A DNA stretch of 54,112 bases, taken from Octopus bimaculoides (taxonomy: Eukaryota). Shown here one piece after another: positions 1,736-50,501 of the stretch; position 1 is the first letter of the stretch, and each line of letters opens with the position of its first letter. The position numbers and the translations under genes were made by a program. The notes beneath the pieces are model-generated. The model did no database searches. It had not been told where the DNA came from and saw nothing but the letters and a program-made list of their open reading frames with translations. Where the stretch lies: the NCBI RefSeq assembly GCF_001194135.2, contig NC_069002.1, forward strand, positions 36,600,433 to 36,654,544. Reading direction: 5' to 3'.

Positions 1736-2366
1736 CAAGTCTTTACTTCATTTTAACCTTGGAATTTGTTATTTTAATGAGGAATATTTTCATTAACAAA
1801 AACAATCTTCATTAACAACACCCGGATTTTTGAAACGTCATCAAAAAGATGGCCCTTATCTTTCTTTTCTGCCGGGTTACTTCATCCATTGGAAATATGG
1901 AACATTATTCATGGTCCGATATATTTACTGACGTCACCCAGTAGTGGAATGCTTATGATCATCGATGCCATATGCAACATGAACAAGATAAGTTGGGGCA
2001 CGAGAGAATCGAGCTACCAAACTCCTGAACAGAAAGCACAACTAGAGAGAGCGAAACTATCACGGACTAAAAAATGGTGGTCATTTCTGAGAAAACAAAG
2101 CGACAAAACCTTTAGTCTGGTAGATTTATTTACTTGTAAGTGTTGCCATAAACCAGCCGATATTACAGGAGACATGAAAATGAATAGCATCCTCGATAAA
2201 CTGGATGCGATTGAGAAACGTATCGAGAGTTTACCGAAATCTGGAAATTATTCTTTGGTCGGCTCCAATATGTCATCGACATTCAATTCGTCAGCCCAGA
2301 ATGGCGATAGTAAAGAAAGAAGACCTTCCACCCGGAGAGCCAAAACAGATGGAAGGGAAGGCAGTG
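1736..2366 (+). CDS. chs: Chitin synthase copy A, penultimate exon; 5' end disrupted, start coordinate uncertain
   Basis: The frame from ~1868 reads SAGLLHPLEIWNIIHGPIYLL...ICNMNKISWGTRE, matching the HPQE...WGTRE region. It is followed by a CKCC cluster and a coiled coil (SILDKLDAIEKRIESL). Donor G|GTAAGT at 2367 is phase 1 and matches the acceptor at 4482. Confidence 0.8.
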
Positions 2367-4482
2367 GTAAGTAAAGTACACCGTTCCTATGGGTGGGGAT
2401 CTACGTGGTCATTTGACTTGCTAGAAATAGCAACCAAGCCTTCCAAATTGCTCATTGCATTTTAAATCTTTTTTTAAGGTGGGGGGGGAATTAATTAATG
2501 CACTCTGTGATAAGCTATATCAAAAAGTTGAGATGGTCATGGTTAGAATCCTTTTGGTTAAGTATTTATTTTACGAGGGCTGACTTGAGACCAAATAAGC
2601 CTTTACGTGTATCTTTTAACCTAACTACAACTTACATTTAATTTCTCTCAAATCGCACCCTCTCGGCTGCTTCTAGTTTATTTTAAGGAAGATTAAGCGC
2701 GGCATGCCACATTTCACACGGTCACGGCTTCAAGTCCATTGACGTTTTTGGTTCTTCTATGCTGTCAGCCATTCCAGGTTGTGTTTACTTAAGGATATAT
2801 ATGCCAACCCCCGAGCTAAGAACGGTAGAGGCGGTAGAAAGTCGAACAAAAATACCTCATACTATTTATTTGATTGCATCCCTTAACGTTTTGATTGCGC
2901 CTCCTCTTTAGGCTCAGTTTCACCTGAAGCCACTCAAAATAACACCAAAAGTACTCAGGTCAATATGATCGGCTAATGTCCCAAAACGTTGGGCCTCACT
3001 AAAGCCAGAGAGAGAGAGAGAGAGAGAGAGAAGTATTGTAATAATAGGGAATGCCAAAATCCAGACTTACAAGGATATTCAGTTTAGTAATACCATATTG
3101 AATTTTATAATAAATATGTTAATAATTTAGAGATGAACCACCAAAATGCAATTCAAACAATGAAGGAGATCAAAGACCATCAAGAAAAACGTACTCTACA
3201 AAGTACTAATTTAAAAATCTATAAAATCTAAAAGAAAAGTTTATAATCCATAAAAATCTATAAAATACTAGACTTAAAATTTAATTAGTTAAGTAAGTTG
3301 ATAAAAAAGAAAGTGAACTGTAGACTACGCGCGTTTCGTGGCCACATAATACCAGAAAAATCTGTACAATTCACAATAAATCTATCAAGATAAATTCTAC
3401 TCAAAATGGAGTCACTGTTCATGTGTTTATAAATTCAAATAACGTATCCTACTATTTAAATAATACAAATAAAATAAAATAGGAATAAAGTAGGAATATC
3501 TGTACAAGTAGGAAAGCTCTTATAAGAACACTACATAAAATGTCAAGGTTTAATAATAATAATGATAATAATTCCACTAATAAAGAAATGCTATCTGACG
3601 ATTAAGAATAGGAATACATATTAAAAAAATAGTGTTATTAACTAATAAAAGAATTCGGACATTTAATAGTATTAATTAAATAAACGGCATCATTTATCTT
3701 AACGAAAATTCCTTGTTGACTGTAGTATTAACCTTAATGCATGGAAGTCATACGAAGTGTGTCACATGACAATATGGCCTCTCTCCGTGAACAAAATATC
3801 AAACTTACTATATAGAATTTAAAATATATAAATCACGTGACAATATGGCGTCACAAGGAGAAGATAGAAGAACATATTATAATGGATAAAATGACGAAAT
3901 ATGTATAGGAATCGGGAAACTAATCTGTAGTATGCGATTTAGTGGAGGAATAATATTTTAATTATTATTGAAGTCCAAGTAATAAGAGCTAGTAAAAGTA
4001 AGAGGCATTTAAGGTACGTAGGTCATGCTGTATTATGAAGAATAGAAATATTTCGTTGAACTTATTATTCATCTCTAAGTAGCTCACTTACTTTTATTTT
4101 AACTATGTATTTTTCTCAAAATCTTCACAATCCAACTAAACTTTATTGTCTTCTGCGTAAAATGTATTGTGCGCCTATGGACATTTATTTCTCTGTGTGA
4201 TAGGATAAGAAAAGAGCTATTCAACTTAGTTGTCCTTAAGTGGGAGTTTTTGTTGTTGTTCACGAAAGAGATGGGAAGCGAAAGCACAACTGTGTTGCAA
4301 GAACCCACAAACAGCAAGATAAAGGTGGGTGGGAGTGACTAGGAGAATCGAACTAGCGAACAACAGGCGTAAGTGGTTCGTTGCTTTTTTTTTGGGGGGG
4401 GGGCTAAATTCCAACCAGTTTCCCTTATAATAATAAAAAAACCATTTATGAATAACGTAAATTTTCTTTCATTTTGATACAG

Positions 4483-5672
4483 GTGCGTATGAAAGAAGTT
4501 CATTCAGCCTCAGTGGAACTTCGGGATGGCAACGTGATTTACAAGACTTATCTGAAGATATTAGTGTCATCAGTGAGAAAGAACAGGAATTCTGGGACGA
4601 ACTCATTAAAAAATATCTTGAACCACTCAACATAAGCGAAGAAAGACAGATAAAGGATGAAAAAAATCTCGATGCTCTCCGTAATAAAGTCTGTCTTTTT
4701 TTCTTTCTTTGCAACGGTCTGTTTACCATAATTATTTTCACGCTACAGTTCATCAACAATCGAAGCATAAATACCGATTCCGCAGGTTTATATATATCAT
4801 TGCCGTGTTACTCAAATACAGGCTACCAGCTAAAAATCGAACCACTGTCCATGCTATTCATGGTGATGTTTGGTGCCATTCTGCTTATTCAGTTTATTGC
4901 TATGGTGTATCACCGACTTTCAACACTGCACCATATTATAGCATCGACATATATAAACTGTTTGAAACCAAGCCAAAGTGAAACGTCCTATATGAACATA
5001 TTCAGTAATTTAGAACTAGTTAGAGACATGATTAACCAAGAGAAAGAGGACGACGAGAAATCCATTTTGTCCAATGACAGCATCACCACATCTGCATATA
5101 ACACCCCTCCAAGAAAGCGCCGAAAAACAGTTATAAAACTGGCGAGAAAAAACAAAACCAAGCAGCCAAGCAACAGTCTCGCAGATATATTCTTGCGGAG
5201 TTTTCTAAAACAGGAAAAAGGTGCTCCGAAAATTGAACCCAGCTTGAAATTTCAAGGGAGGAACTCAATGCAAACTTTCACCGCATTAAGAGATCAAAAA
5301 CATTCAGTTTTAGAAAAAATAGATCGTATCAATGACATCATAAAACAAAAAGAACTTACGAAACTGACCCAAATCCCTGAACATGACTCTAACATGTCTC
5401 TTCCATCCACCAGTCAAACATCAGCACGTACTGACGAAGCCAGTGATATTCCAGCAGTCAAAAGTATGTCTTCTTCTAAGACTAAAAGAAAGAACAGTTT
5501 TCTCGCCAGAGTAGACGAGCTGAAGACGTTTCGTGGTAGCCATGAAAGTCACTCAGATAAAATGGCTGTTCAGGACATGTCTGACAGCGATCGATCTATG
5601 GCGTCGCATTTAGACGTAAGATGTCATGAAAACGTTTCATCAAATTATCTAATGCAAACTAGTCGATTATAA
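4483..5672 (+). CDS. chs: Chitin synthase copy A, terminal exon
   Basis: Acceptor TTTTGATACAG at 4481-4482. The open frame reads W...ISEKEQEFWDELIKKYLEPL...LDALRNKVCLFFFLCNGLF...IEPLSMLFMVMFGAILLIQFIAMVYHRLSTLHHII, the classic CHS C-terminal TM region, with the stop at 5670-5672. Confidence 0.92.
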
Positions 5673-5979
5673 AAGCAACTGAAGGTTTTATTTTACCACG
5701 TACATATCTCTCTTATAAATAGGAAAACAAAAGGGCGTACACAGTCGATACAATCGGCTGGTGTAGCTCCCTGGCTTCTGTTTAATCAACCCCCTCGAGG
5801 AAACGGGCAAACGAGACACTGACATGATATTAACTCAGGCGTGCGTAGCATCTAGTCAGATATTGATATGTTATTTGTGCCATAATCCTTTACACCTGTG
5901 AAAAAGCATACCTATTCAATTAATGGATTCTTCAAATTAGAATTCTTTAATTCTTTCACTATCCTACAATCACTTCCTA

Positions 5980-6330
5980 CACACACACGCACGTGCTTAT
6001 ATATATACGCACGTGCCTATATATATATATATATATATATATATGTTTATATATAGTTGAATTAGGTACTTAAGTTATGTTTATATATATATATATATAT
6101 ATATATACATACATTATATATATGTGTGTATATACATATATATATAATTTCATAAGACGTTATCAATATCTGTATCAATATGTAGATATTTAGGTATCAA
6201 AATTGCTGCTGACACACACAAACATACACACGTACAAACGGACACAAACCTACATATATATATATACATGAATACACACGCACGCACATGCGCGTGCGTG
6301 CGTGTGCGTGTGCGTGTGTATGTGTTTGAA
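5980..6330. repeat. Compound (AT)n/(AC)n/(GCGT)n microsatellites
   Basis: Direct inspection. Confidence 0.9.
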
Positions 6331-6898
6331 AGTGTTGAAATCTCGGTTGCAGCTTTTTACGTTTCTTACTCGCAATTTCATTTAAATATTCTCGCATTTG
6401 AAAATATCTGACTCTTTGGGGTCTCTAAATGCAGTCAAATATATGGAGAAGAATTAATGCATATCATTTCTGATTCTGTGACACAACTGAATGCAAGACA
6501 TAGTTTTCGGTGAAGCGCAATTAACTCTGATATTAATACTGCTACAAACAATAACAATAATTATTATTATTTTATTTATTCATTTATTATTATTATTATT
6601 ATTATTATCATCATCATTATTATTATTATTAAAATTGTCGTTGCTTTATTTTGTACGAGCCGCTCGAAGTCTCACAAGTTATACGTTTTTGTTGTATTTG
6701 TTATTTATGAGAAGCAATCGTATATTGTTGGGAAGGGAGTTCGCTAAAATTTGGGGGTAAATTTTTACCATTTTCAGATATTCTCAGTTTGATATTTTTT
6801 TTTTTATCATATGGCAGTATCCATGAGAACATTTCCTTTTAATTCTGAGACTGCTGGGTACTTGTATGTGATACTTGCATGTGACTATAGTATATAAG

Positions 6899-6949
<51 letters not shown>

Positions 6950-6951
<2 letters not shown>

Positions 6952-7163
6952 GGCGGCGAGCAGGCAGAATCGTTAGCACGCCGGGCGAAATGCTTAGTGG
7001 TACTTCGTCTGCCACTACGTTATGAGTTCAAATTCCACCGAGGTCGACTTTGCCTCTCATCCTTTCGGGGTCGATAAATTAAATACCAGTTGAACACAGG
7101 GATCGATGTAATCGACTAGTCCCCTCCCCACAAATTTCAGGCCTTGTGCCTATATTAGAAAGG
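6950..7163 (+). mobile_element. SINE family B, copy 1
   Basis: AAGGCGGCGAG...GAATCGTTAGCACGCCGG...GAGTTCAAATTCC...GAGGTCGACTTTGCC...GGGGTCGATAAA, then an (ATT)n tail. Repeated four times locally. Confidence 0.88.
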
Positions 7164-7179
7164 ATTATTATTATTTTTA

Positions 7180-7383
7180 AACCAGTGAGCTGGCAAAAAT
7201 CGTTAGCACGCCGGACGGAATGTTTGGTGGTATTTCGTCCGTCTTTACGTTCTGAGTTCAAATTCCGCCGAGGTCGACTTGTCTTTCATCCTTTCGGGGT
7301 CGATAGATTCAATACCAGTTGAATACTGTAATCAACCCATCCCTTCCCCCCAGAAAAGCTGCCCTTGTAGCAAAATTTGAAAG

Positions 7384-7384
<1 letters not shown>
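7180..7384 (+). mobile_element. SINE family B, copy 2
   Basis: Colinear with 6950-7163 and followed by (ATT)n. Confidence 0.85.
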
Positions 7385-7429
<45 letters not shown>

Positions 7430-7493
7430 GATTACTACTATTACAATTATTACCATTGCTCTGCTGTCACTAATATTATTGTTGCCTCTGTTA

Positions 7494-7707
7494 AGCCAGC
7501 GTGCTGGTAGATTTGTTAAGCACATCGGACAAATTACTTAGCGGATTTCTTCGGCTTTACGTTTTCAGTTCAAATTCCACCTTAGTCGACTTTGCCTCTC
7601 ATCTTTTCCGGGGTCGATAAAATAAGTACCAGTTGAGCACTCGGATCGATGTCATCAACTGGTCCCCTTCCCCAGTATTTCAAGCCTTTTCCTTATTGTA
7701 TCAAAGA
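7494..7707 (+). mobile_element. SINE family B, copy 3 (more diverged)
   Basis: Colinear blocks CAAATTCCACC...GTCGACTTTGCCTCTCATC...GGGGTCGATAAAATAAGTACCAGTTG. Confidence 0.8.
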
Positions 7708-7765
7708 TTATTATTATTATTGTTATCATCATCATCAACATCATTATTATTATTATGAGAATTGT

Positions 7766-7980
7766 GAAGGCAGCGAGCTGCCACAATCATTAGCACGCTG
7801 GACGGAATGTTTGGCGGTATTTTGCCCGTCGCTACGTTCTGAATTCAAATTCCGCTGAGGTCGACTTTGTCTTCCATCCTTTCGGGAACGATGAAATAAG
7901 TACCAGTTGAACACTGGGGTCAATGTAATCGGCTCATCCCCACCTCCCCCAAGCTGCCCTGGTGACAAAAAATTTAAAAT
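7766..7980 (+). mobile_element. SINE family B, copy 4
   Basis: GAAGGCAGCGAGCTG...CAAATTCCGCTGAGGTCGACTTTG...AAGTACCAGTTGAACACTGGGGTC. Confidence 0.82.
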
Positions 7981-9114
7981 AATTATTATTAGAATTGTAT
8001 TAAAAGTTTTACTTTCATTCTGTGTGCCACCGGTGTGCATACAGCATGTGAATATACTATGCTTATATACCATATTAATATAATAGGGATATATGCACTT
8101 TTCATACAGTATATGTATATTATACACTATCTGTGTTTCTTTAATCTATTGTTACTCCAATATTCATTTATTAAAAATAAATTTTTTACAAAACCACACT
8201 TGTGATTATTGTTTGTAATTTCTGTTGCTTCTTTCGTTACTTGTGTATGAATTAGTGGAATTTGTGTAATATTCTATATTTACAAATACACAAATATATA
8301 ACTCTCTATAAATTCAGGGATAGTGCAACTCATAACCAGAGCATTAGCAAAGAAGCATATTTTATCGCAAAATATAAACCTATTTTGAACGCCGCCACCA
8401 CTACAGATGAAACGACAAGAATTTAGAACAATTCCAACCACTACTGCTACGACCACAACAGGTCACTTTTAGGTCAATTGACCATTAAAGAGATTCCACG
8501 AACAATTTACAGTACTCCTGTATTTTTCTTCTCTTTTCTTCTCTTTCTCCTCCCTCTTCTTTCCCTACTCCTATTTCTCTTCCTCCTTCATCTTCTACTC
8601 CTCCTCCACCCCTCCTCCTTTTCTTTTTGTTTTTCTTCTCTTTCTTCTTTTCTTCATTCGGCTGCTCCTGCTAAAACTATCAATTTTCTGTGCCCAAACT
8701 ATTCCTTCAGATTTACTACTACCCACCTGACTTTGTTGCCTCATAACTTCCAGAAAAATGGATACTTTTTAACGAAACTTTCACCAAATAATTGCTTATA
8801 TCCTATAGATTGAGTGTATGTAAAGATTTATTGGAAAAAGGTTCCGAGAAGGTGGGGAGAAGAGTTTCGGAAAATTCACAGGACCCGACATTTTCCTCCT
8901 CATAACTTTCTAGAAAATAAGTATTTTTAATGAAATTTTATACAAATACCTTTCAAACGCTCTCGATTACGATTACAAAGAAATTTGTTGGAGAGGGGGC
9001 GGGGGAGTTTCTGGAAAACGGAGTTTCGGATCAGACGGCCCACATAAATTGGAGTTTCTCCGTCTTGACGGGGATCTTTTCCAATGTTTTTTCACCATAA
9101 ATGCAAAACAACAT

Positions 9115-9186
9115 CGCGGAGGAATCGACGTAAGCTTAAATGATAAACCGCGATAGATGAACCGCAATATGGCGAGGGATTACTGT
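9115..9186 (+). mobile_element. Terminal fragment of a Tc1/pogo-type MITE
   Basis: Near-identical to 17575-17646 (GACGTAAGCTTAAATGATAAACCGCGAT...GGGATTACTG). Confidence 0.65.
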
Positions 9187-9659
9187 GCTACACATATTTG
9201 AAGAACAGGTTTCTATCGGTGATATCGGTGGACTATGTTCTGTAGGTGGCTTGTTATATCTTTATATGTATTTTTTTTCTGCCTGACGGTAAGAATTTTT
9301 GCTGCCATTGTTGGCTTTTTTATAATTGTTATCGCAGTTGTTCCGTGAAGGATTGCCATTACTGAACAGTTGAACCATTTTTTCCCCGGTTTTACCGGGA
9401 AATATTTCAAAAATATATACATTGACTTTGTTGACCATTGCGACATCCTTATTTTTAAATTTTATTGCCAAAAAAATACAGTGAATAGTCTTTTTAGATT
9501 ATTCTGTGCCCCTCCCCCCGAACGGGGGTGGGATTTGAAACATCTTTGTCCTCTTTTGGAGAACATTTTTTTTCACAGCTTAAAAAATATTTTTTCATAG
9601 GTTTCCCAGTTTGCGTGGGAAAAATATTATTATGCCAATTGAATTTATTTCGCAAAAGG

Positions 9660-10030
9660 AGTCACTCGTTGAGAGTGAAAACATGGCGAAAAAAATTTCA
9701 GCGGTTGCCGAATTGGCAACCGAAAATATCGAAATTGACATAAACAAGCTCGGTGAGATTTTTAAAAGAAAAAGGAAAAAAAAGGGAAACAAAATTATTA
9801 TGATGATGACATGAAAAGCGAACTTGTGTTGATCGAGTTCGATACGAGAGACGACTATATCAGGGGCGTAGTGTTGCCACACCACACTACAAGACTTTAT
9901 AAACAACTGGAGGGACATAAGGAAAGATGTGCCTGGATTGGCGAAGAAACATTCAGGCAGCTGAAGGCTTGGCACCCGAAATCAATCAGGAAATTGGACA
10001 AGTTGCCAAAATACTTAGAGAGGGAGGAAA
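9660..10030 (+). mobile_element. C-terminal fragment of an L1/Tx1-like ORF1
   Basis: IRGVVLP...EETFRQLKAW...KLDKLPKYLE aligns by eye with IIRVKLP...KDTYRKLKDM...EFDKLPPVIE at 20946-21140. Confidence 0.5.
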
Positions 10031-10119
10031 GGGGAGGGGCCGACGAGTGAATGGCGAGATCGGCGCCGACCTCTCCAGTAAAACGTAAGTAGAACTTTTT
10101 CTTCTTTCGAAAGGCCACT

Positions 10120-10520
10120 TGAACCTTCTGTCGCCACTCATCCAGGTCCACTCTGGCACGTTCGGATGTTCAAGCCTGTAACGGTCTGCTAGCTGAAATC
10201 GAGCCGATGCTATCGATGCGAGTGTCAACAATAGCGTTGAAGTCCCCTCACACCACTAATGTCTTCGACGTCATGAGAAAGCCCTATAGGCGCCGATAAA
10301 AGTCAGTTTGGAAACCTCTAGCGCATGGTGCGTAGAGTCCGATCAGCCTGAAGGCCTCACTGCTGTATCTCACATCAAGGACGACCAGCCCACCTTCAGG
10401 GTCCACATAGACTGTACTTGTCTGCAGGGTGAGCAAAGTGGGTCCGAGAAAAGACTGCTCACACACATCTGAAGCTACAGATACTTCTACAGGGTCCAAA
10501 TAGCTGGTGATTCTCATTTA
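10120..10520 (-). mobile_element. L1/Tx1-clade ORF2 AP-endonuclease fragment
   Basis: VYVDPEGGLVVLDV...FRLIGLYAP...DFYRRL and LADRYRLEHPNVPEWTW are typical APE-domain motifs. Split across frames. Confidence 0.72.
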
Positions 10521-10540
10521 ACTGACGTCTCCATTGTGAA

Positions 10541-10939
10541 AGTGGAGGCGCAATGGCCCAGTGGTTAGGGCAGCGGACTCGCGGTCATAGGATCGCGGTT
10601 TCGATTCCCAGACCGGGCGTTGTGAGTGTTTATTGAGCGAAAGCACCTAAAGCTCCACGAGGCTCCGGCAGGGGATGGTGGCCAACCCTGCTGTACTCTT
10701 TCACCACAACTTTCTCTCACTCTTACTTCCTGTTTCTGTTGTGCCTGTAATTCAAAGAGTCAGCCTTGTCACACTGTGTCACGCTGAATATCCCCGAGAA
10801 CTACTTTAAGGATACACGTGTCTGTGGAGTGCTCAGCCACTTGAACGTTAATTTCACGAGCACACTGTTCCGTTGATCGGATCAACTGGAACCCTCGTCG
10901 TCGTAAGCGACGGAGTGCCAACACACACACACACACACA
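10541..10939 (+). mobile_element. Full-length tRNA-derived SINE family C1 with (CA)n tail and 9-bp TSD
   Basis: Head GGCCCAGTGGTTAGGGCAGCGGACTCGCGGTC...GGTTTCGATTCCC carries A/B-box-like motifs. CCATTGTGA is duplicated at 10531-10539 and 10940-10948. A second partial copy lies at 19002-19251. Confidence 0.88.
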
Positions 10940-12020
10940 CCATTGTGAGAAGCTAACGGGTACGACAGACCTACTTCCGTTCCACTAGATGACTTTTAAG
11001 GGATAGAAGCAATCTGGAGGGAATCTTTGTAAGCGTGGTTTTCTTTACCGTCGAGAATCTCTTCCACGTCGGTTTTCATACGTCTTTGACAAGGAGTCAA
11101 TTGGAGCGACAATGTTAGAAGTGCACTCACGCCTCTTCCTTTAAACTTTGCTCTCCACTGTACCCATGGCAACAGAGATATCCGTTTCCGTTAACATAGC
11201 TTCTATTCATAGAAATTTAAAGTGAGACAACTTTAAATGTTACAATGCTATAAAATGTTTTCGATTAGGTAAATACTGATTAAACACAAATCTGCATAAC
11301 ACAGGTGTGTGTGTGTGTGCGCGCGCGTGAATGTGTGTGTGTGCGCGCGCGTGAATGTGTGTGTGTGTGTGTGTGTANNNNNNNNNNGTGTGTGTGCACC
11401 CAGTTTGAGTTCCTGATAACGTTGACTTGACTAAGAATTTCAGAGGGGGGGTTATTTTCACTTATCAGTAACTGAATAAGAACAAAGCATTGGCTATTTA
11501 TCATTCAATCAAAAATTTAATCGACTCTCTCTCTCTCTCTCTTCTCTCTCTTTTCTCTTTCCTCCATTTTGTGTCCTTGTCTCTATGCTAAAAGCTGCTA
11601 ATCTCACTTCTAGGTTATCAGCTCCTCCCTCATTTCGCAACTATTGTTCTTATCGTTTCATATCCCCAGCTATTTGCAACAACTTATCTGAACTTACCAA
11701 TACATTACATTTCACAACGAGAGAGAGTAAGTAAGATCTTTCATTTTGCTTCCTTTCTCCACACATATATTCCGCTTATATGTTCTCTTTTTTTGTCTCT
11801 CATGACAATGGATTGTTTCTTACCGTGCCATGAAGATTGGATTTAGGCATAAGCTACACCTAAAGACCTGCATGAATTTAAATACAAGCTACAACTTGGT
11901 ATTTCAACTATATGAAATCTCATATTATTTTCCTTTTCATTTGTTACAACTTTCATATTGATCTATAATTAAATAATGATTTATATTTTCTTCAATTAAC
12001 GTAATTTGGTAACATTTAAC

Positions 12021-12363
12021 TCTTTTACTTGTTTCAGTCATTTGACTGCGGCCATCCTGGGGCACCGCCTTTAGTCAGCAAATCGACCCCAGGACTTATT
12101 CTTTGTAAGCCTAGTACTTGTTCTATCGGTCTCTTTTTGCCGAACCGCTAAGTTACGGGGACGTAAACACACCAGCATCAGTTGTCGAGCGAAGTTGGGG
12201 GACAAACACAGACACACAAACATATACACGCACATACATATATATATATACATATATACGATGGGCTTCTTTCAGTTTCCGTCTACTAAATCCACTCACA
12301 AGGCTTTGGTCGGCCCGAGGCTATAGTAGAAGACACTTGCCCAAGGTGCCACGCAGTGGGACT
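12021..12363 (-). mobile_element. SINE family A, near full length
   Basis: Body ACTTGTTTCAGTCATTTGACTGCGGCC...ATCGACCCC...GCCGAACCGCTAAGTTACGGGGACGTAAACACACCA, internal microsatellite, head GGTGCCACGCAGTGGGACT. Partial copies recur elsewhere in the window. Confidence 0.88.
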
Positions 12364-12584
12364 CTTTTATTCATTTACTTCCAGTCGTTAAACTGTGGCC
12401 ATGCTACCGCATGTTAACAATTGTTAAATAGAGTATAACCTCTTACATAATTCTCTCTATTGGGGTTTCACCATTGCTAAATCTGGCTCCACGTACGAGC
12501 CCGGGGCAATAGATTTGTTTCAAACCAGCACTGCTAAGCTGTTGTTGTTGTTGTTGTGGCTGCTATTGTTTTTTTTGTTTTTGT

Positions 12585-12786
12585 TTTTTACTTGTTTCAG
12601 TCATTACACTGCGGCCATGCTGGGGCACCGCTTTAAGGAATTTACAGTCGAATAAATCGACCCCAGTACTTTTTTAAGCCTGATACTTATTGTATCAGTC
12701 TGTTTTGCCGAAATGCCAAGTTACGAGGACGCAACTTGTCAAGCGGTTGTAGAGCGGTAGTGGGGGTAAAAACGACACACACACAC
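12585..12786 (-). mobile_element. SINE family A, 3' portion
   Basis: Colinear with 12021-12200. Confidence 0.8.
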
Positions 12787-13252
12787 GTTGCTATTGTAGA
12801 TGTTTCTAGACTATTTTTGCCGTTGCTGTTATTGAAGCTGTTGCTTTTGTTGCTATTTAACCCCAGTCATCTTGATCAAGCAGACTAATCAAAGGTATTT
12901 CAATCCGAACAACACTGTCAATTTTCTTCGTAGTGGTGGACGGGTTACACACAACATTAATAAATGTGTACATTTTATGTAAAGACGGTACGACGAGACT
13001 TGGGCATAATTTCACTGCTATTTCTAGCAGATCAAGTACCGCTTGGAAACCTCCTCATTGACATCAGTTCCCATGTAAAAGAAATATCGATCATTTAGAG
13101 GGCAAATATCTGGACAAAATGCCTTTAAGGTTACATTAACTCTAAAATAATCCGATTTCATTTCTCAAAAAGAAAAGCGGACAGAAACGAAGACATTTTT
13201 CAAAATTCGGTGCCTCGTTTACATTAACTCAACCTCTTATATATATATATAT

Positions 13253-14009
13253 NNNNNNNNNNNNNNNNNNNNNNNNNNNNNNNNNNNNNNNNNNNNNNNN
13301 NNNNNNNNNNNNNNNNNNNNNNNNNNNNNNNNNNNNNNNNNNNNNNNNNNNNNNNNNNNNNNNNNNNNNNNNNNNNNNNNNNNNNNNNNNNNNNNNNNNN
13401 NNNNNNNNNNNNNNNNNNNNNNNNNNNNNNNNNNNNNNNNNNNNNNNNNNNNNNNNNNNNNNNNNNNNNNNNNNNNNNNNNNNNNNNNNNNNNNNNNNNN
13501 NNNNNNNNNNNNNNNNNNNNNNNNNNNNNNNNNNNNNNNNNNNNNNNNNNNNNNNNNNNNNNNNNNNNNNNNNNNNNNNNNNNNNNNNNNNNNNNNNNNN
13601 NNNNNNNNNNNNNNNNNNNNNNNNNNNNNNNNNNNNNNNNNNNNNNNNNNNNNNNNNNNNNNNNNNNNNNNNNNNNNNNNNNNNNNNNNNNNNNNNNNNN
13701 NNNNNNNNNNNNNNNNNNNNNNNNNNNNNNNNNNNNNNNNNNNNNNNNNNNNNNNNNNNNNNNNNNNNNNNNNNNNNNNNNNNNNNNNNNNNNNNNNNNN
13801 NNNNNNNNNNNNNNNNNNNNNNNNNNNNNNNNNNNNNNNNNNNNNNNNNNNNNNNNNNNNNNNNNNNNNNNNNNNNNNNNNNNNNNNNNNNNNNNNNNNN
13901 NNNNNNNNNNNNNNNNNNNNNNNNNNNNNNNNNNNNNNNNNNNNNNNNNNNNNNNNNNNNNNNNNNNNNNNNNNNNNNNNNNNNNNNNNNNNNNNNNNNN
14001 NNNNNNNNN
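13253..14009. other. Assembly gap (N run); further gaps at 14744-15050, 17027-17247, 18104-19001, 25012-25562 and short ones elsewhere
   Basis: Runs of N, mostly bordered by microsatellites or repeats. Confidence 1.
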
Positions 14010-14014
14010 ATATA

Positions 14015-14160
14015 TGGGAGAATTTACGAGAAAAACAACAGACGAAGACAGGTGGTGTAAACAATAAATGGATGTATTAGTATAACGCTCGGGAATAGAG
14101 AAAGTCTTTGACGTTTCGAGCCTACGCTCTTCAACTGAAAGGAACACAGAAAGAAACAAG
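14015..14160 (-). repeat. Short interspersed repeat with a GAGC-GTAG-GCTC-GAAAC-GTC motif
   Basis: Its reverse complement matches 16890-17026. Confidence 0.75.
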
Positions 14161-14167
14161 GAGAGAG

Positions 14168-14407
14168 AGGTGTAAATCCATTACGGCCGTTTCTAACGAC
14201 TTCTTTTATTGATTAATAAAAACATTACATCATTGTAAAGAAACTATTTTCGTCAGATGACTCCATGAACTTCAAAATCATTTTGAATGTCCTTTATTTG
14301 GAACTTCATGAATTCATCTGACGAAAACGGTTCCTATACAATGTTGTAATGTTTTCATCAATCAATTTAAGGAGTCGTTAGAAACGGCCGTAATGGACTC
14401 ATACCTG
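14168..14407. mobile_element. Foldback/MITE with ~105-bp inverted arms
   Basis: TCCATTACGGCCGTTTCTAACGACT pairs with AGTCGTTAGAAACGGCCGTAATGGA. The arms stay in register (position sum 28574) to ~14273/14301. The right end CCTG|TA is Tc1/mariner-like. Confidence 0.8.
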
Positions 14408-14675
14408 TAACTCTACTGTTACTCATATTTTATCCACCTGTCTCAGAATCCATCCTTCATAAATATTATGGACCGTATATTTAATATAATGTTCATGTCT
14501 GAACAGCTCAAGATTTCTTCACTCAGCTGAGTCTAATTGTCAACATACGTTGCAAGAATATCATTCGTCCGGTACTTATGTACCAACTTAGATATTTACA
14601 TAATATTGTTGTGTGTGTATATTCTTCTGACATAACGAGATGCCTCAATTTAAGTACCTAATTCGACTGAATCTA

Positions 14676-14743
<68 letters not shown>

Positions 14744-15089
14744 NNNNNNNNNNNNNNNNNNNNNNNNNNNNNNNNNNNNNNNNNNNNNNNNNNNNNNNNN
14801 NNNNNNNNNNNNNNNNNNNNNNNNNNNNNNNNNNNNNNNNNNNNNNNNNNNNNNNNNNNNNNNNNNNNNNNNNNNNNNNNNNNNNNNNNNNNNNNNNNNN
14901 NNNNNNNNNNNNNNNNNNNNNNNNNNNNNNNNNNNNNNNNNNNNNNNNNNNNNNNNNNNNNNNNNNNNNNNNNNNNNNNNNNNNNNNNNNNNNNNNNNNN
15001 NNNNNNNNNNNNNNNNNNNNNNNNNNNNNNNNNNNNNNNNNNNNNNNNNNATATATATATATATATATATATACATATTCTTTTATTCT

Positions 15090-15255
15090 TTTGCTTGTTT
15101 CATTCATTTGACGGGAGCCATGCTGGAGCATCGCCTTTAGTCGAACAAATCGACCCCAGGATTTATTCTTTGTAAGCCTAGTGATTATCTTGTCCGAATC
15201 TCTTTGGTCGAACCGCTAAGTTACGGAGAGTAAACACACCAACATCGGTTGTCAC
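15090..15255 (-). mobile_element. SINE family A, 3' portion
   Basis: Colinear with 12021-12190. Confidence 0.8.
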
Positions 15256-15539
15256 GTATTCAGAATGAGGTCAATGAACAAAACTGGTCGACTAGTCTCT
15301 TTACGCGAGATATTGACATAAAACTACGGAACTTTATGACAATCATGCATGACATATGCAGTAAATGAATGTCAAATCAACAAAGTTCCTGAATGTCAAA
15401 CCAACAAAAAAAAAAAACATAACTCCCAGAGATAGGAAGATTCTAATGTAACGACGAGCAAAGATTTCAAACTGTCAAAGTAGACCACTAAAGGAAAGCG
15501 TAAAATCCTGTCACAAACATATACTGCTTGGGATTGAAA

Positions 15540-16820
15540 GTGAACTCAAACACTCCCTTGAAAAGGAGAGAGCAAAGAAAAAACTCAGGATTGTAAAGAA
15601 GGTAAACCCTAAAACTTTCTATAGACTTGCAGATCTGCTTCAGTACGGTACAAGTTAAGGCCGCTGTGCGAAGAAAATAGCTCACCGACTACAGTCCCCC
15701 AGCGGATAAGTGAATGTGTCACACAAAAGTGTTTTCCCAACTCTGTTGGGAGTTGATTAAAGGAATTCAAGTAAAGCACGATATGTCTTAGCCACAAAGG
15801 AAGTGACAGAGCAGATGCTAAAAATTATAGGCCTGTCTCTCTAACCTCACGTGTATCAACGTCATGGAATACATTGTCTGGAAGAAGCTGATCACGTTCC
15901 TAGAAGATAATTTCTTGCTCCCTGACATTGAGCATGGCTTCCACTCAGGAAGAAGCTGTCTTGTACAGCTTCGGCAGCATTATGACTGTATTGGAACAAC
16001 TAATAAATCGCTCAAACGTGGATGTTAGACACTTCGATTTTGCGAATGCTTTTGATAAGGTTGATCATGGGATGATACGCCACAAGTTACGGAGACTCGG
16101 GAGAGTTGTTACATGACTTCTTAAAAGAGAAAAGTCAGGCTGTAGCTGCCAACAGGCCCTCTCCAGGGAGATAATAATAGCGGGTGGAGTGCCTCAGAAA
16201 ATTGTCTTGGGGTCGCTGTGGTCCATGGTGGCTCTATCGGATATGCCCTCATTTACAGACAGCCACACTCACTAGTGTGCCGATGACACAAAAGTAGTAG
16301 AAGCAGCCAAGGAACCTCTCGATGCTAATCTTCTAGAGAAAGACCTAGATGCCATATATGAACGGACTGAAAAAAAAAAACATGCAACTTAATGCAGGAA
16401 AATTTCACCCCCACCCCCCCGCTAACACGCTGCAGCAAGGATACTTTGAACCAAAAGGAGTGGCAATTCCAGGGTCAAGTACAACAACGCCTTGCTTCAT
16501 GTGCCTATCAGTAAGATAGTAGCAATGAGCACGCAAATGGTTAGATTGATTCTGAGAACTTCCAGAACAAGGGACCAGGAAACTGCACTCGGTCTACGGA
16601 GAACATTTGTCCTCACCTGTGTGGTCTACTGACCTCAACTGTGGTCACTGCACAGTGTAAAATTAACAGCTGAACTTTAGGCAGCTTAGTGGTGCTACGC
16701 CCGGAAGATTGCAGAAATGGAACAACTGAGCTACTGGGGGAGACTAAAAGAACTACGGCTCAACTCTCTGAGCGAAGACAGAAAATATATGCAGTGATAT
16801 ATGGGAGACCCTGGAGGGGT
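15540..16820 (+). mobile_element. Decayed CR1-clade LINE reverse transcriptase (ORF2)
   Basis: Across broken frames: NYRPVSLTS, HGFHSGRSCL, FDFANAFDKVDH, GVPQ, ADDTKV, ILRTSRTRD, LSYWGRLKELRL. Multiple stops and frameshifts. Confidence 0.85.
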
Positions 16821-16889
16821 TGGCACCAAAAGACTGGCCATTGAAAAGGTGATAACAGTGGCGGTGCTCCAGCATGACGACAGCATTTG

Positions 16890-17026
16890 GGCTTTCCTCT
16901 CAATCTTTTCTGTCGAAGAGCGTAGGCTCAAAACGTCAAAGACTTTTCCATTCTTCCTGAGCGTTACACCTGCTTGTTGTTCCCTCACCTGTCTTCGTCT
17001 TTTGTTTTTTCTGTAAATTTGCACTA
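16890..17026 (+). repeat. Second copy of the short repeat with the hammerhead-like motif
   Basis: TGTCGAAGAGCGTAGGCTCAAAACGTCAAAGACTTTT...CACCTGTCTTCGTC matches the reverse complement of 14015-14160. Confidence 0.75.
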
Positions 17027-34549: not shown

Positions 34550-35460
34550 ATTTGCGTAACAGAATGTCTTCACACTGTTGGTTTATGGATGCTCGTGTTT
34601 GTTTTGCTACCAAACGTGGAACCAGTGCAGGCAGTGCTTATATTATATGGCATCACATTCTTTCCATGTCTTCTTGACTTCGTTGCTTCTGTTTTACTGT
34701 TTGAGACACCCTCATCTTACACTGTTGACTATTCGAAAAAAAAATCTTTCGGCAGAATATTTCTGACTGTATTGATTTTTCTCCTTACCGCCATGCTTAT
34801 CGCCTCTTATACATATTTCCAATATAAATGCAAACCCACTTTGCACTATTTGATTCCCATCGCGCTCATTCTCGTGTCTATACGGTGGTGGGAGTCTTTT
34901 GCCGATATCATAGAAGATGAATTCTTTACAGAGATGTTATCCAAAATAAAAGAAAACAAAGCCGGAAGTAATGTTTTCATGTCACCCTTGAAAATAGCAC
35001 TCAACCTTTTCTTAACGGCCCTTTATTTTTCATTTAACAAAGAGTGCACAGAAGTCCTGATTTTCGTCAACGAAAAGTTATCACATTGCGGATTATCAGA
35101 AACGACTCTGAAATCTGATCCCCATTTCAATGAACCGTTTACTTTCGCAAGCATTAACATTATATCGTCCTTTTTATGTTTTCAGTTCGCGAAAGTTGCT
35201 TGCAAACTGATGCTTCAGAATCTGTCTTTTTCTTTCCCTTTGATTATTGTTGGCCCTGCTTCGTTCTTCCTAGTCTCTTACATACAGCACAGACGAACGT
35301 CGTTTCTAGATTTTGGACAAGTCAATTGCAACGACTTTGTCGACGTTTTCCAACAGTTCGGCTGCAACAGCATCTTGTTAATCTTATTGTTCATCGCTTA
35401 TGTAATAACCACAAGGCACGTGTGGTACCCGAAAATTGAGAGACTTGCCAAAGACAGAAA
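34550..35460 (+). CDS. chs: Chitin synthase copy B exon (N-terminal TM domain A)
   Basis: Acceptor TTTTCCAG, phase 0. Reads ICVTECLHTVGLW...LVSIRWWESF...CFQFAKVACKL...HVWYPKIERLAK. Donor AA|GTAAGT, phase 2. Confidence 0.92.
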
Positions 35461-35893: not shown

Positions 35894-35990
35894 ATTGTTC
35901 TTCAAATTGAGTTACTGTGGAATCTTGCTGGACCAAGATCTACTTCTAAACAGAAGACATGACAAAGGTGAAGTGAAAGCGGACCAAAAC
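35894..35990 (+). CDS. chs: Chitin synthase copy B exon
   Basis: Acceptor TATTGCAG, phase 2. Reads KLFFKLSYCGILLDQDLLLNRR. Donor AAC|GTAAGA, phase 0. Confidence 0.88.
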
Positions 35991-36826: not shown

Positions 36827-36969
36827 GCCATCAGAATCAGTGCCATGAAATATGATGCGGATGGTATGCATATGTATAAACTAGGATCCACACCAAAAAT
36901 TTACGCATGCGCAACAATGTGGCATGAAACGGAAAACGAAATGTTACAATTATTGAAATCTATGTTTAG
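36827..36969 (+). CDS. chs: Chitin synthase copy B exon (CATMWHET)
   Basis: Acceptor T-rich TAG. Reads KIYACATMWHETENEMLQLLKSMF. Donor AG|GTATTG, phase 2. Confidence 0.95.
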
Positions 36970-37897: not shown

Positions 37898-37977
37898 AAT
37901 GGATAAAGACCAATTCACACGGAGTTTCATGCAAGAGAAAGTTGGTATCGTTGACAACGACTACTATGAATTTGAAG
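37898..37977 (+). CDS. chs: Chitin synthase copy B exon
   Basis: Acceptor TTCTTGCAG. Reads RMDKDQ...DYYEFE. Donor G|GTTCTT, phase 1, which restores YYEFEGHIFFDDA with the next exon. Confidence 0.88.
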
Positions 37978-39139: not shown

Positions 39140-39239
39140 GTCACATATTTTTTGATGATGCTTATACAAGAATAGACGGTGAACCCCAAATCAATGCATA
39201 TGTCGAATGTCTAATGAAATTGGTAGAAAAGGCAGGCAG
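39140..39239 (+). CDS. chs: Chitin synthase copy B exon (HIFFDDA)
   Basis: Acceptor TACAG, phase 1. Reads GHIFFDDAY...NAYVECL. Donor AG|GTAAAT, phase 2. Confidence 0.93.
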
Positions 39240-39606: not shown

Positions 39607-39757
39607 CGCAATCCACACAGACGTCTTTATCGAGAAACCGACGATATGTAGTACGCCGTATGGAGACCGCTTGGAATGGATCCTTCCTGGTGGAAACAAA
39701 CTGGTCGCCCACCTAAAAGACAAAAATAAAATAAGACACAGGAAGCGGTGGAGCCAG
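39607..39757 (+). CDS. chs: Chitin synthase copy B exon (TPYG, KRWSQ)
   Basis: Reads TPYGDRLEWILPGGNKLVAHLKDKNKIRHRKRWSQ. Donor CAG|GTGAGG, phase 0. Confidence 0.95.
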
Positions 39758-41524: not shown

Positions 41525-41735
41525 GTCATGTACATGTACTACGTCTTGGGCCACCAGATTGCATCCGTTGATATCAAGATAGGTCAAAAAGTTAAACGTT
41601 CCGATAATACATTTTTGCTAGCTTTAGACGGAGATGTAGATTTCGAACCGTCGTCTGTTCTGCTTTTATTGGACAGAATGAAGAGAAACCCTGTGGTTGG
41701 GGCAGCTTGTGGAAGAATACACCCCATTGGAAACG
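41525..41735 (+). CDS. chs: Chitin synthase copy B exon (DGD motif), ends at a GC donor
   Basis: Reads VMYMYYVLG...FLLALDGDVDF...GAACGRIHPIGN. Donor G|GCAAGT at 41736, phase 1. Confidence 0.93.
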
Positions 41736-42218: not shown

Positions 42219-42419
42219 GGCCAATGGTATGGTACCAGAAATTTGAATATGCAGTCAGTCATTGGTTACAGAAATCCGCTGAACACATGACCGGATGTGT
42301 TCTTTGCAGTCCCGGATGCTTTAGCCTTTTCCGAGGATCAGCACTAATTAAGCCAAACGTTCTGAAGAGATACACTACAATGCCAACTGAAGCTAAACAC
42401 CATGTACAGTACGACCAAG
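42219..42419 (+). CDS. chs: Chitin synthase copy B exon (catalytic core)
   Basis: Reads GPMVWYQKFEYAVSHWLQKSAEH...GCVLCSPGCFSLFR...VQYDQ. Donor G|GTAATT, phase 1. Confidence 0.97.
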
Positions 42420-43258: not shown

Positions 43259-43656
43259 GTGAGGACCGATGGCTGTGTACACTTCTGCTGCAAGAAGGGT
43301 CTCGAGTTGAATACTGCGCAGCGTCCGACGCCTTAACATATTGTCCTGAAAACTTTAACGAATTCTTCAAACAGCGAAGGCGATGGGCTCCGTCTACTAT
43401 GGCAAACATAATAGAACTTCTAGTCGACTGGCGGCATGTACGACAAGTAAACAGCAGTATATCTTTGCCGTATATCATCTATCAGACTGGTTTAATGGCC
43501 GTCTCAATCATAACGCCTGCAACAATTTTCCTCCTTGTGGTCGGGGCTTTGACAGCAGCTTTCCCGTCTATATCGTTGACAGCTTCTCTGTTTATTAACC
43601 TCATCCCAGTCGTAATCATGCTATTCTTGTGCTTTGTGTCACCAGAAGATACCCAA
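43259..43656 (+). CDS. chs: Chitin synthase copy B exon (GEDRW, QRRRW)
   Basis: Reads GEDRWLCTLLLQ...FFKQRRRWAPSTMANI. Donor CAA|GTATGT, phase 0. Confidence 0.97.
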
Positions 43657-45198: not shown

Positions 45199-45952
45199 CT
45201 GAAATTTGCCTCGATAATAACGCTGTTCTATACTATAGCAATGATGCTTGTGTTTGTCGGTTTGATGAAAGAAATCTTTGAATACAAGTTCTGTTCCACT
45301 ACTGCTTTTTTGTTCACATTTGTTGCCGGCACGTTTCTGACGTCTGCATTTGCTCATCCACAAGAATTCAGTTGTGTTCTCCATGGTCTTCTTTACTTTC
45401 TTTTTGTGCCATCCACATCTATTCTGTTGATGGTTTATGCTCTGGGAAATCTCCACAATATTACCTGGGGAACACGAGACAATGCAGCTAAAGGTAAACC
45501 CGCTCCTGTCAAAGGGAAAAAAATGGCCTTTAATCAAATTAAGAATGTTTTAATGTCAAATTCTTCTGAGGGAAATGAAAAAGAATCCGAATACTCCTTT
45601 TCGTGTGGATATCTTTGCCGCTGTCTGTGTTTTCTGAAGGAGAAATCGAACAAAGAGCTAACACTTCTCGCGACAATATTAGAAAAGCTAGATAACCTTA
45701 TAAAACCTAAAGCATCAAAGAAAATAGATTCAGAGCAAACGGTCCCCTTGATAAAGATCAATAATGATGCAAACGCGGAAAAAGAGGGTGAGAGCAGAGC
45801 AGAAGATCAGGATCTCGCGAAACAACAACCAATACAACAACAACCAATACAACATCAACCAATACAACATCAACCAGTACAACAACAACCACAGCCAGAA
45901 GAACAACAGCCAACGGTAGAAACACAAGAAAGCAATCGCGTCACTTTTGCAG
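45199..45952 (+). CDS. chs: Chitin synthase copy B penultimate exon (HPQE...WGTRD, Cys cluster, coiled coil, Q/P repeat)
   Basis: Acceptor TTTTTCAG, phase 0. Reads AHPQEFSCVLHGLLYFLFVPS...NITWGTRD. Donor G|GTATAC, phase 1. Confidence 0.93.
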
Positions 45953-48589: not shown

Positions 48590-48740
48590 AGTATTCAATC
48601 GACCCCAGTACTTGACTTATATTGTAGCTTATTGACTCTAAAAACAAGATTTAAACTCGGTTCACAAAAGGACAAAAGTTGTAATTAACTACTTCCTGGC
48701 GTTTTGGTCGATTCTATAATTTACCGACCCTGCCAATTCA
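48590..48740 (-). mobile_element. Degenerate SINE family B
   Basis: ATCGACCCCAGTACTTGACT...ATTTAAACTC...GTCGATTCT are residual blocks. Confidence 0.5.
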
Positions 48741-49008
48741 CGCAAACTCTTTGACAAAAAAAGACATGTAGCATATGGTAGTGTGATCGATTTAAGCTGG
48801 TAGGGGTTTTATTTTTGATAAAGATGATGAATGTAATGTTAATAAAATCTAGCTCAGTAAGTCTGCAGTTCAAAAGAGGAAAATGAAAAATAATACTCGT
48901 AAATGTATAAATCATAAGTTCTCAATTATACTATTTCCCTCTTTTATTTATCTTTTATTTTATTTTTCTCGTTATTAATTTAATTTTATTTTATTTTTCA
49001 TGAATCAG

Positions 49009-50501
49009 ATTCGAGTGGTAAACCAACATATTGGCAGGAGCATGAGTATTTGAAAACTCTGAATGTGGCTGAACTTAGTGAAAGAGAAGACGAATTCTGG
49101 CGTGAGCTTATCCAAAAATACCTTTTTCCCATTGAGGAAGATGCAAAGAAAAAGAAAGAAATGGAAGCAAAATTACTCGAGCTTCGCAACAACGTTTGTT
49201 TGGCATTCTTCATAATAAATGCCTTATTTGTAGTGGTTATATATGCCATCGAATATAATGTTCAGACGAGCAAGAGTATCGGTTTACAAATTTACTGTTC
49301 TGACATGGAAAAAACCAAAATCGTAAATGTCATTTCGCTTGTCTTTTCAGCCGTATTTGGTGTAACATTGGTAATTCAACTGATCGCGATGCTATTTCAT
49401 CGATGTGGTACATTCTTACATATTTTATCAACTATCGATTTGTCTTTGAAGCCGATCAATAAAGAAATTATCGAAGAATGTCGTCAGAGTCTACTTTCAA
49501 CGAGTAAAGGCGACAATTACAGCGATGCAACAACCGATACTGTGGGTAGCACTAATTACGAAAAGAAAAAGAATCGGCGTGAAACAAAGAAAATATACAA
49601 GTCAAAGGCTCCACCCCTGTACAAAGATCTTCCCTCGAAGGCCGAGAATACGTTAGTTCATGTGGTGGATGATTATGTAAATCAGAACGATACGACGCAC
49701 TTATTTTCGATCAACAAACCAAAAATGAATTGGATGCCACTACTTGATAATGAGGATATACAAAAAGAAGTTTTCGAAAAAACAGACGAGATCAAACAGA
49801 GATGGCGAACTCTCATCGATAGAGCAACCACGTGTGATCTGACGACTGTTAAAGGAGTTACGAAAGCATTAATGGAAATGAGAAACCAGAGTAACACAAA
49901 ATCGAACAAAGATGAGCAGGAAGATTCCATTTGTATTACTGGAAGTAAGAACGACGTTTCATCATCTCCAAAGTTAAGGAATAAATTGCCAAGTATTCAA
50001 TTTGAAAATTATAATTCAACCTTCGAAACAGATGCAATTGTTCATTCAAGTAACAAAGTCAAAATACCAGGAAAGGATACATCAAGCTCTGATGAAGATT
50101 TTGAGGTCAGATCGAAGGGAAAGAATAAGTTGCTGAGATATACATCTGATCGAAACTTACGGAGAAATACAAATTTAAAGTCCAAACAGAATCCACTTAA
50201 AAGGGCAGCATCATTACTCATTTCATCAAAAAACCGGACCCCAACAACGAAGTCTGTGCCAAATGCACTAACATCAACCACAACACTGACGACGGCGATG
50301 GGAAGTATGTTGACGGTAACTTCAGCGGCTGCGAATGCAGAGTATGAAAACAACGTTGGCGCGAAAATGGCTTCGCCTGGAGACAATGTGAACGCAGTTC
50401 CGCAGAAAACGTGGAATGACGATTCAATTTCGATGATGACCAATTCGACTGACGAAGAAACATTGTCTGATAATTCAGATAGATATGAGACACAATTTTA
50501 A
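49009..50501 (+). CDS. chs: Chitin synthase copy B terminal exon
   Basis: Acceptor GAATCAG, phase 1. Reads YWQEHEYL...LSEREDEFWRELIQKYLFPI...LLELRNNVCLAFFIINALF...LVIQLIAMLFHRCGTFLHILS, then a long tail. Stop at 50499-50501. Confidence 0.95.

Follow-up and report, generated by a model that had tools for sequence, protein, structure and literature searches.

Does a pair of neighboring chitin synthase (CHS) genes in the octopus Octopus bimaculoides represent a recent local duplication, or two old lineages lying side by side? The question is raised by a stretch of 54,112 bases from contig NC_069002.1 (positions 36,600,433 to 36,654,544 of the forward strand; hereafter the window), which has a GC content of 38% and is interrupted by nine assembly gaps (runs of N), and in which a tandem pair of CHS paralogs had been predicted from the sequence. 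With a probability of roughly 0.8, we read the window as carrying two type II (insect-type, GT2) CHS paralogs that diverged long ago and lie head to tail, the downstream gene (copy B) being intact and the upstream gene (copy A) being represented by its 3′ end.

A motif scan of the six-frame translation recovered exactly one set of CHS catalytic motifs in the window, all on the + strand and all in copy B (CATMWHE at 36908, QKFEY at 42236, GEDRW at 43258, QRRRW at 43372, and WGTRD at 45466). The same scan recovered two C-terminal signatures, one for copy A (WGTRE at 1994 and FWDELIKKYLEP at 4590) and one for copy B (FWRELIQKYLFP at 49095). Given one catalytic set and two tails, copy B is a complete CHS gene in the window, and copy A is the tail of a second. 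The two same-strand loci of the original prediction were both located on the + strand, and the distance between them, initially given as ∼25 kb, measures 23.9 kb from the copy A stop (5672) to the copy B ATG (29567), of which 2764 bases are N. No third CHS copy was found, either by the motif scan of the window or in the flanking O. vulgaris sequence that was retrieved.

The tails of the two copies are 26% identical over 421 amino acids (aa), or 27.5% over 287 aligned columns, and are unalignable past ∼230 aa of the last exon, in agreement with the deep divergence that had been suggested for them. The relationship of the genes was analyzed with neighbor-joining (NJ) trees of 287 tail columns and 265 catalytic-core columns, with the O. 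vulgaris copy A representing the copy A lineage (termed A-type) in the core comparison. In the tail tree, copy A grouped with its homolog from a cuttlefish-like contig (L002) in 99% of bootstraps and copy B with its O. vulgaris counterpart in 100%, and a clade uniting A-type and B-type sequences appeared in 0.7%; in the core tree, A and B were sisters in 0 of 200 bootstraps. The sister placement that had been proposed as a test of local duplication therefore failed in both data sets. The catalytic core of copy B is 61.1% identical to that of the A-type, vs. 63–68% to those of Tegillarca, Pecten, Crassostrea, and Patella CHS, and the best core match of the A-type is itself a Patella protein (P0192, 68.7%). 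Furthermore, P0122, which is closely related to the L002 product (P0121), falls in the same 90%-identity cluster as a sequence named “CHS1 [Sepia pharaonis]”; the presence of this cuttlefish protein in the A-type cluster indicates that the A-type predates the octopus–cuttlefish split. A and B are not each other’s closest relatives, as recent tandem duplicates would be, and the duplication that separates them is ancient and predates the coleoid split.

The adjacency of the two genes, their common strand, and their common exon structure could also have arisen if a tandem duplication occurred recently, within cephalopods only, and the copies then diverged very rapidly. This scenario is very improbable, however, considering that A and B are never sisters in the bootstraps, that each copy is closer to the CHS of other mollusc classes than to its neighbor, and that the A-type is found in cuttlefish. 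Copy A also shows no rate acceleration: in a relative-rate test it was not significantly accelerated against its nearest relative, and the result was significant only when copy B served as the outgroup. Finally, the intron structure that the two genes have in common is ancestral, as detailed below.

The last intron had been described as shared by the two genes in both position and phase, and local duplication had been inferred partly from it. The phase is indeed the same (phase 1), and the position corresponds only approximately, the conserved Trp lying 15 codons after the split codon in copy A and 8 codons after it in copy B, across a variable linker. In copy A, the donor GT directly follows 2366 (G/GTAAGT) and the acceptor AG directly precedes 4483 (cag/GT), so that the first two bases of the last exon complete a split Gly codon; in copy B, the donor GT follows 45952 and the acceptor AG precedes 49009. 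A phase-1 intron located 8–19 codons before the conserved Trp also occurs in O. vulgaris A, in O. vulgaris B, in the A-type gene of L002, and in CHS genes of Potamilus (a bivalve) and Bulinus (a gastropod). The phase-1 last intron is thus ancestral to mollusc CHS and, being ancestral, is uninformative on local duplication; it represents inherited family structure instead of the mark of a recent local event, and the argument from the cuttlefish-like, Potamilus, and Bulinus genes removes this part of the case for local duplication.

Whether the two copies are truly neighbors was examined by comparison with O. vulgaris, in which the copy A ortholog was found by an exhaustive HMMER search with the last exon (protein word searches missed it). 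The tail of this ortholog, CAI9738743.1 (P0190, 229 aa), is 80% identical to the copy A last exon and is encoded at 2196504–2197193 of chromosome OX597835.1, on the same strand as the ATG of the O. vulgaris copy B (2175912) and 20.6 kb away from it. The two O. vulgaris loci used here, L005 (OX597835.1 2186504–2207193, reversed) and L001 (2142670–2185912, reversed), abut with 591 bp between them, and neither contains N. Positions 1866–14685 of the window are collinear with L005 (blocks 1866–2768, 4153–6570, 7816–8213, 10943–12020, 12363–13248, and 14151–14685), and positions 15055–52593 are collinear with L001 (blocks 15055–18102, 22285–23204, 29384–29676, and onward). Block 10943–12020 is a single high-scoring segment pair that extends across a 10-N gap. 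Between 23.2 and 29.4 kb, the window holds ∼5 kb of window-specific sequence, which includes a Mutator-like element (MULE) transposase fragment. Synonymous divergence between the window and O. vulgaris is ∼0.2–0.5.

Seven gaps lie between copies A and B (11378–87, 13253–14009, 14744–15050, 17027–17247, 18104–19001, 25012–25562, and 27900–19), and a single short block departs from the O. vulgaris order, as might be expected if the adjacency were an artifact of scaffolding across runs of N. Against this explanation, which is extremely improbable, the order and orientation of the blocks match those of an independent, N-free O. vulgaris chromosome, with the exception of one 181-bp block (26307–26487). 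The collinearity corroborates the scaffold joins, and the scaffold misjoin that had been named as a threat to the original prediction is not borne out, the same A-then-B arrangement being present in the gap-free chromosome. The adjacency of A and B, confirmed independently of the scaffolding as in a tandem CHS cluster (20.6 kb in O. vulgaris), is thus genuine, head-to-tail, and conserved in position and orientation.

Copy B (29567–50501) was modeled as a complete gene of 13 exons, with a joined coding sequence of 5061 nt that is open throughout and a protein of 1686 aa (Table 1). Splice junctions were fitted with the O. vulgaris protein P0001 and with nucleotide conservation at locus L001. The introns have AG acceptors throughout and GT donors save one, a GC donor after exon 9 (intron 9, 41736–42218; GC-AG, donor GCAAGT), and this GC donor is also kept in O. 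vulgaris. All exons are conserved in that species, exons 2–13 at 72–98% aa identity and the short ATG-containing exon 1 at ∼43–64%. The ratio of non-synonymous to synonymous substitution rates (dN/dS) against O. vulgaris is lowest in exon 11, intermediate in exons 12 and 3 (Table 1), and reaches 0.67 in the low-complexity last exon. None of the assembly gaps in the window touches an exon, and the gaps therefore raise no question about the reading frame. One of them (47228–47237, 10 N) is located inside the last intron of copy B and is flanked by two copies of a 224-bp sequence with 98% identity (47004–47227 and 47253–47476). Both copies map to a single O. vulgaris segment, and the repeat is therefore an unmerged contig overlap, i.e., a false duplication.

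The predicted copy B protein matches the Pfam family Chitin_synth_2 (PF03142; 91.5 bits, cutoff 27, E 6.5e-26) and carries every catalytic or product-binding motif tested (CATMWHE, LALDGDVDF, QKFEY, GEDRW, QRRRW, and WGTRD). Its GT2 core matches the fungal and oomycete chitin synthase structures 7xs6, 7stl, and 7wjm of the PDB (∼150 residues, E 1e-12). In a search with the catalytic exons, identity was 90% to P0001, an O. vulgaris protein annotated as “chitin synthase,” and 42–61% to CHS of molluscs, arthropods, nematodes, and vertebrates. Hydrophobic segments, recognized directly in the sequence, are visible in exons 2–3, 11–12, and 13 of copy B and in the last exon of copy A. The myosin motor motifs GESGAGKT, NxNSSRFG, and DIxGFE (P-loop, switch I, and switch II) were found in no frame across the whole window. 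The conservation of the copy B ATG exon in O. vulgaris also speaks against a fused motor. Copy B is therefore predicted to be an intact, constrained CHS without a myosin domain. Its N-terminus would consist of clustered hydrophobic segments that presumably span the membrane; the GT2 core (DGD, QxFEY, EDR, QRRRW) would be cytosolic and would be followed by additional hydrophobic segments, including WGTRD, and by an extended tail of low complexity. By homology, the enzyme would polymerize UDP-N-acetylglucosamine (UDP-GlcNAc) and extrude chitin through the membrane.

Table 1. Positions of the copy A and copy B exons and of the adjoining features in the window; L001, O. vulgaris copy B locus; P0001, O. 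vulgaris protein used for junction fitting.
Feature	Coordinates	Strand	Characteristics
Non-coding stretch upstream of copy A homology	1736..1865	+	Stops in all frames; no homology to the ortholog’s exon over its 5′-most 130 nt
Copy A penultimate exon, 3′ part	1866..2366	+	SAGLLHPLEIW...SWGTRE...GREGS; GT donor at 2367, phase 1; open frame 1781–2371
Copy A last exon	4483..5672	+	Phase-1 acceptor; W...EKEQEFWDELIKKYLEP motif; two hydrophobic segments; low-complexity tail; stop at 5670–5672
A–B intergenic interval	5673..29566	.	Seven assembly gaps, transposon debris, and SINE-like repeats; collinear with O. vulgaris (blastn)
Copy B exon 1	29567..29655	+	ATG, MAVKLGKVVYRNHAF...; phase 2 donor; conserved in L001 10001–10099; joined frame open
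Copy B exon 2	31554..31986	+	KLPWDVF motif; first hydrophobic segments of the N-terminus (putative membrane segments); aa identity 80% (L001 13471–13917); splice sites conserved
Copy B exon 3	34550..35460	+	Hydrophobic block of the N-terminus (putative membrane segments); aa identity 86% (L001 15534–16445); dN/dS 0.25
Copy B exon 4	35894..35990	+	Junctions fitted to O. vulgaris P0001
Copy B exon 5	36827..36969	+	CATMWHETENE motif
Copy B exon 6	37898..37977	+	Junctions fitted to P0001
Copy B exon 7	39140..39239	+	Junctions fitted to P0001
Copy B exon 8	39607..39757	+	Junctions fitted to P0001
Copy B exon 9	41525..41735	+	LALDGDVDF motif; followed by the GC-AG intron
Copy B exon 10	42219..42419	+	QKFEY motif
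Copy B exon 11	43259..43656	+	GEDRW and QRRRW motifs; dN/dS 0.035
Copy B exon 12 (penultimate)	45199..45952	+	Hydrophobic (putative membrane) segments; WGTRD; Cys-rich block; Q-rich repeat; phase-1 donor; dN/dS 0.16 over the first 208 codons
Copy B exon 13 (last)	49009..50501	+	Phase-1 acceptor; W...EREDEFWRELIQKYLFP motif; low-complexity tail; stop; 79% aa identity to L001 37302–38798

Copy A had been taken as a gene in its own right, and in the window it is a 3′ fragment that is broken in mid-exon. Only two exons are represented, the penultimate in part (∼1866–2366) and the last (4483–5672); the fragment status follows from the absence of both the 5′ part of the penultimate exon and the catalytic part of the gene from the window. 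Of the catalytic and product-binding motifs, it has only SWGTRE there, while the O. vulgaris ortholog carries the catalytic exons, with LALDGDVDF, QRFEY, DRWL, and QRRRW. The in-window tail has no Pfam match, which is expected, as the Chitin_synth_2 profile spans the catalytic core and this core lies outside the window. Copy A would be the 3′ portion of another CHS gene that belongs to a separate lineage of equal age, the A-type, common to O. vulgaris and cuttlefish, and the rest of the gene would lie beyond the left edge of the window or have been displaced.

What remains of copy A looks functional, with 166 + 395 open codons at 79–83% aa identity to O. vulgaris. By blastn, window positions 1866–2768, which include the penultimate exon, correspond to L005 5717–6637 at 86% (70% aa identity by tblastn), and the last exon has 83% aa identity to L005 9452–10687. 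The dN/dS is 0.49 in the penultimate exon and 0.42 in the last exon overall, with a lower value, 0.23, in the conserved ∼200 codons at the start of that exon. Near-invariant CHS columns are retained at 40 of 44 positions in copy A and 38 of 44 in copy B, and both copies are under purifying selection. At 1964–1966 (...LMIIDAICNM...), within the conserved hydrophobic segment before WGTRE, copy A encodes an Asp where O. vulgaris A, L002, and nearly all CHS have Tyr or Phe; this substitution may be a sign of relaxed constraint in the lineage.

The penultimate exon of copy A had been predicted to start at 1736, which is contradicted by stops at 1754, 1775, 1778, 1794, 1813, and 1831 that close all three frames. 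In-frame AG acceptors occur only at 1781 and 1848, and both are poor. The orthologous O. vulgaris exon is intact across this region (LVTAAILTCIYTLSMILVVIGLILKMAEEGICAPTTIFFLFLLGIFISAGLLHPLEIW...). Downstream of the break, window positions 1866–1995 are identical to that exon at 122 of 130 nt; upstream, the score of a global alignment of 1736–1865 with L005 5587–5716 is matched or exceeded by 237 of 300 shuffled sequences, and positions 126–1865 have no match in the 64 kb of O. vulgaris sequence around both genes (L005 and L001). The copy A homology therefore ends sharply, in mid-exon, at ∼1866. A 19-bp imperfect tandem duplication (1786–1823) was considered as the cause of a frameshift; its removal restores the frame, but all of 1736–1865 is non-homologous to O. 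vulgaris, and this candidate was rejected. Pfam and repeat searches were uninformative on the identity of positions 1–1865, except for a SINE-like (short interspersed nuclear element-like) repeat at 28–125 and a tandem duplication of ∼100 bp (1009–1210, 95–100% identity), and the sequence surrounding the latter is without a counterpart in the O. vulgaris intron.

Two accounts of this break were considered. The first is an assembly chimera or collapsed join at ∼1866, in which case copy A would be intact and expressed, with its upstream exons just outside the window; we give this account a little less than an even chance. It agrees with the draft quality of the assembly and the redundant flanks of the gap at 47228–47237, with the strong purifying selection on the copy A tail, and with the intactness of the O. 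vulgaris ortholog across exons 9–13. It agrees less well with the breakpoint itself, at which there is neither an N gap nor a repeat (a (TATG)n microsatellite stops 130 nt upstream), or with the open frame that continues for 28 codons upstream of the break, possibly by chance.

The second account, which we put forward tentatively and at odds somewhat below even, is a real disruption in this species or haplotype, in which ≥1.9 kb of sequence was inserted or rearranged at ∼1866, producing a young pseudogene or truncated gene; two hydrophobic segments and the ancestral acceptor of copy A would have been lost with it. The sharpness of the breakpoint within the exon, from near-identity downstream to shuffle-level similarity upstream, is suggestive of such an event, as are the stops in the ancestral frame (1813 and 1831) and the absence of a good in-frame acceptor. 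Odd residues at conserved sites (HPLE for HPQE, which is found in O. vulgaris A as well, and IID for IIY, which is confined to the window copy) point in the same direction, as does the higher dN/dS of the penultimate exon in copy A (0.49) than in copy B (0.16). However, the remaining codons of copy A are open and under purifying selection, with most invariant columns retained, no transposon signature was found in 126–1865, and the assembly is demonstrably error-prone, with its nine gaps and the 224-bp false duplication.

Several points weigh against reading the window as an ancient pair with an intact copy B and the 3′ end of copy A. Only ∼570 codons of copy A are present in the window, the 5′ 130 nt of its penultimate exon are missing or replaced in the sequence as assembled, and the gene may be broken in this species. 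For copy B, exon 1 and the start codon are predicted from conservation only. The deep nodes of the NJ trees, built from 265–287 columns, are poorly supported, and the A–B duplication is probably older than the mollusc classes, a dating that follows the ranking of identities and not a resolved phylogeny. In addition, the 181-bp block at 26307–26487 is out of order relative to O. vulgaris; a small-scale rearrangement, repetitive sequence, or local misassembly around the gaps at 25012–25562 and 27900–27919 could be the cause. The block corresponds to L001 12636–12816, which lies in intron 1 of the O. vulgaris copy B, while in the window it is located upstream of copy B exon 1.

Molluscs have up to ten chitin synthase (CS) paralogs, of which groups A–C carry a myosin motor and group D does not, and in Lottia gigantea CS2–4 and CS7–8 are tandemly repeated (Zakrzewski et al., 2014, PMC3942024). 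The octopus pair resembles this lophotrochozoan expansion, in which there are several type II CS paralogs per mollusc genome, some of them adjacent on one scaffold, and whose diversification has been dated to early lophotrochozoan or mollusc evolution (PMC3942024). It differs from the Lottia tandem genes in that its members are not mutual closest relatives, and in that, in Patella vulgata, the sequences closest to B and A (P0003 and P0192, respectively) are located 7.8 Mb apart on one chromosome, i.e., not in tandem. Neighboring CHS copies are already known in molluscs, and the octopus pair is an ordinary case of them. A literature search returned no description of a CHS cluster in cephalopods.

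The myosin-motor-linked mollusc synthases, such as the bivalve shell CS (Weiss et al., 2006, cited in PMC3942024), resemble the octopus genes in their GT2 catalytic core, in the hydrophobic segments and WGTRE region of the C-terminal part, and in the exon with W...EFW..LI..YL.P; unlike groups A–C as characterized there, copy B is without a myosin motor, and the N-terminus of copy A lies outside the window. The O. vulgaris gene models include orthologs of both copies: P0001 (“chitin synthase,” 707 aa) and the adjacent 524-aa model correspond to B (90% aa identity) and P0190 to the A tail (80%), with gene order and strand as in the window. Unlike the copy B model presented here, these are fragmentary: P0001 skips exons 2–3, with their N-terminal hydrophobic segments, and the last exons were called as separate genes. 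Insect CHS1 and CHS2 and nematode chs-1 and chs-2, which are type II metazoan CHS, are similar in their catalytic motifs and PF03142 domain, with arthropod and nematode core identities of 60–65%; insect, nematode, fungal, and oomycete CHS nevertheless belong to different lineages, and the structural match is limited to the GT2 core.

Tight linkage of A and B is, on the available sequences, evident only within Octopus; on contig L002, no B-type exon was found in the 10 kb that follow the A-type gene. That the two genes are ancient tandem duplicates that have been linked since before the octopus–cuttlefish split, possibly since early molluscs, with copy A perhaps recently knocked out by an insertion into an exon, is unlikely; the nearest Patella relatives still share a chromosome. 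If true, such long linkage would mean that the paralogs share, or divide between them, the regulatory elements by which each is directed to a different chitinous structure. In cephalopods, these structures include the beak, the radula, the sucker rings, the gut cuticle, and the gladius or stylets, and to our knowledge it is largely unknown which synthase builds which of them. A division of labor between chitinous tissues for A and B is speculation. The 13-exon copy B model is cleaner than the fragmented O. vulgaris annotation, and, together with the A-type partner that accompanies copy B in two octopus species, it offers targets for expression and knock-down studies. The pair extends to octopus the documented picture of ancient, sometimes clustered, lophotrochozoan CS paralogs and opens no new question.

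Several minor observations were made on the related loci and on the repeat content of the window. In the O. vulgaris copy B (L001 33100–33300, corresponding to window positions 45800–45900), exon 12 differs in its Q-rich repeat, PIQ(H/Q)Q, by an insertion of 5 nt (aatag), which shifts the frame, and by a deletion of 12 nt; the annotation consequently ends P0001 at this point and treats the last exon as a separate 524-aa gene. On contig L002 (ENA contig ctg116999l; 7860–7890), the A-type penultimate exon shows a frame change between 7863 and 7890 and an in-frame stop; an indel error in the long reads is the probable cause, with a real lesion as the alternative.

Transposon debris recognized with Pfam lies between the two genes, comprising a zf-CCHC gag-like open reading frame (ORF) at 20172–20570 (+) and the MULE transposase fragment at 27993–28514 (−). 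Further debris is present at 24242–24562 (−) and, within intron 1 of copy B, at 29670–30110 (−). Debris ORFs also give a weak match to a reverse-transcriptase zinc-binding domain, and another is reverse transcriptase-like by eye only, with no Pfam hit. The SINE-like repeat, which occurs at 28–125, 12015–12363, and 15055–15254, is present in many copies and in both orientations, in the window as well as in O. vulgaris L001 and L005.

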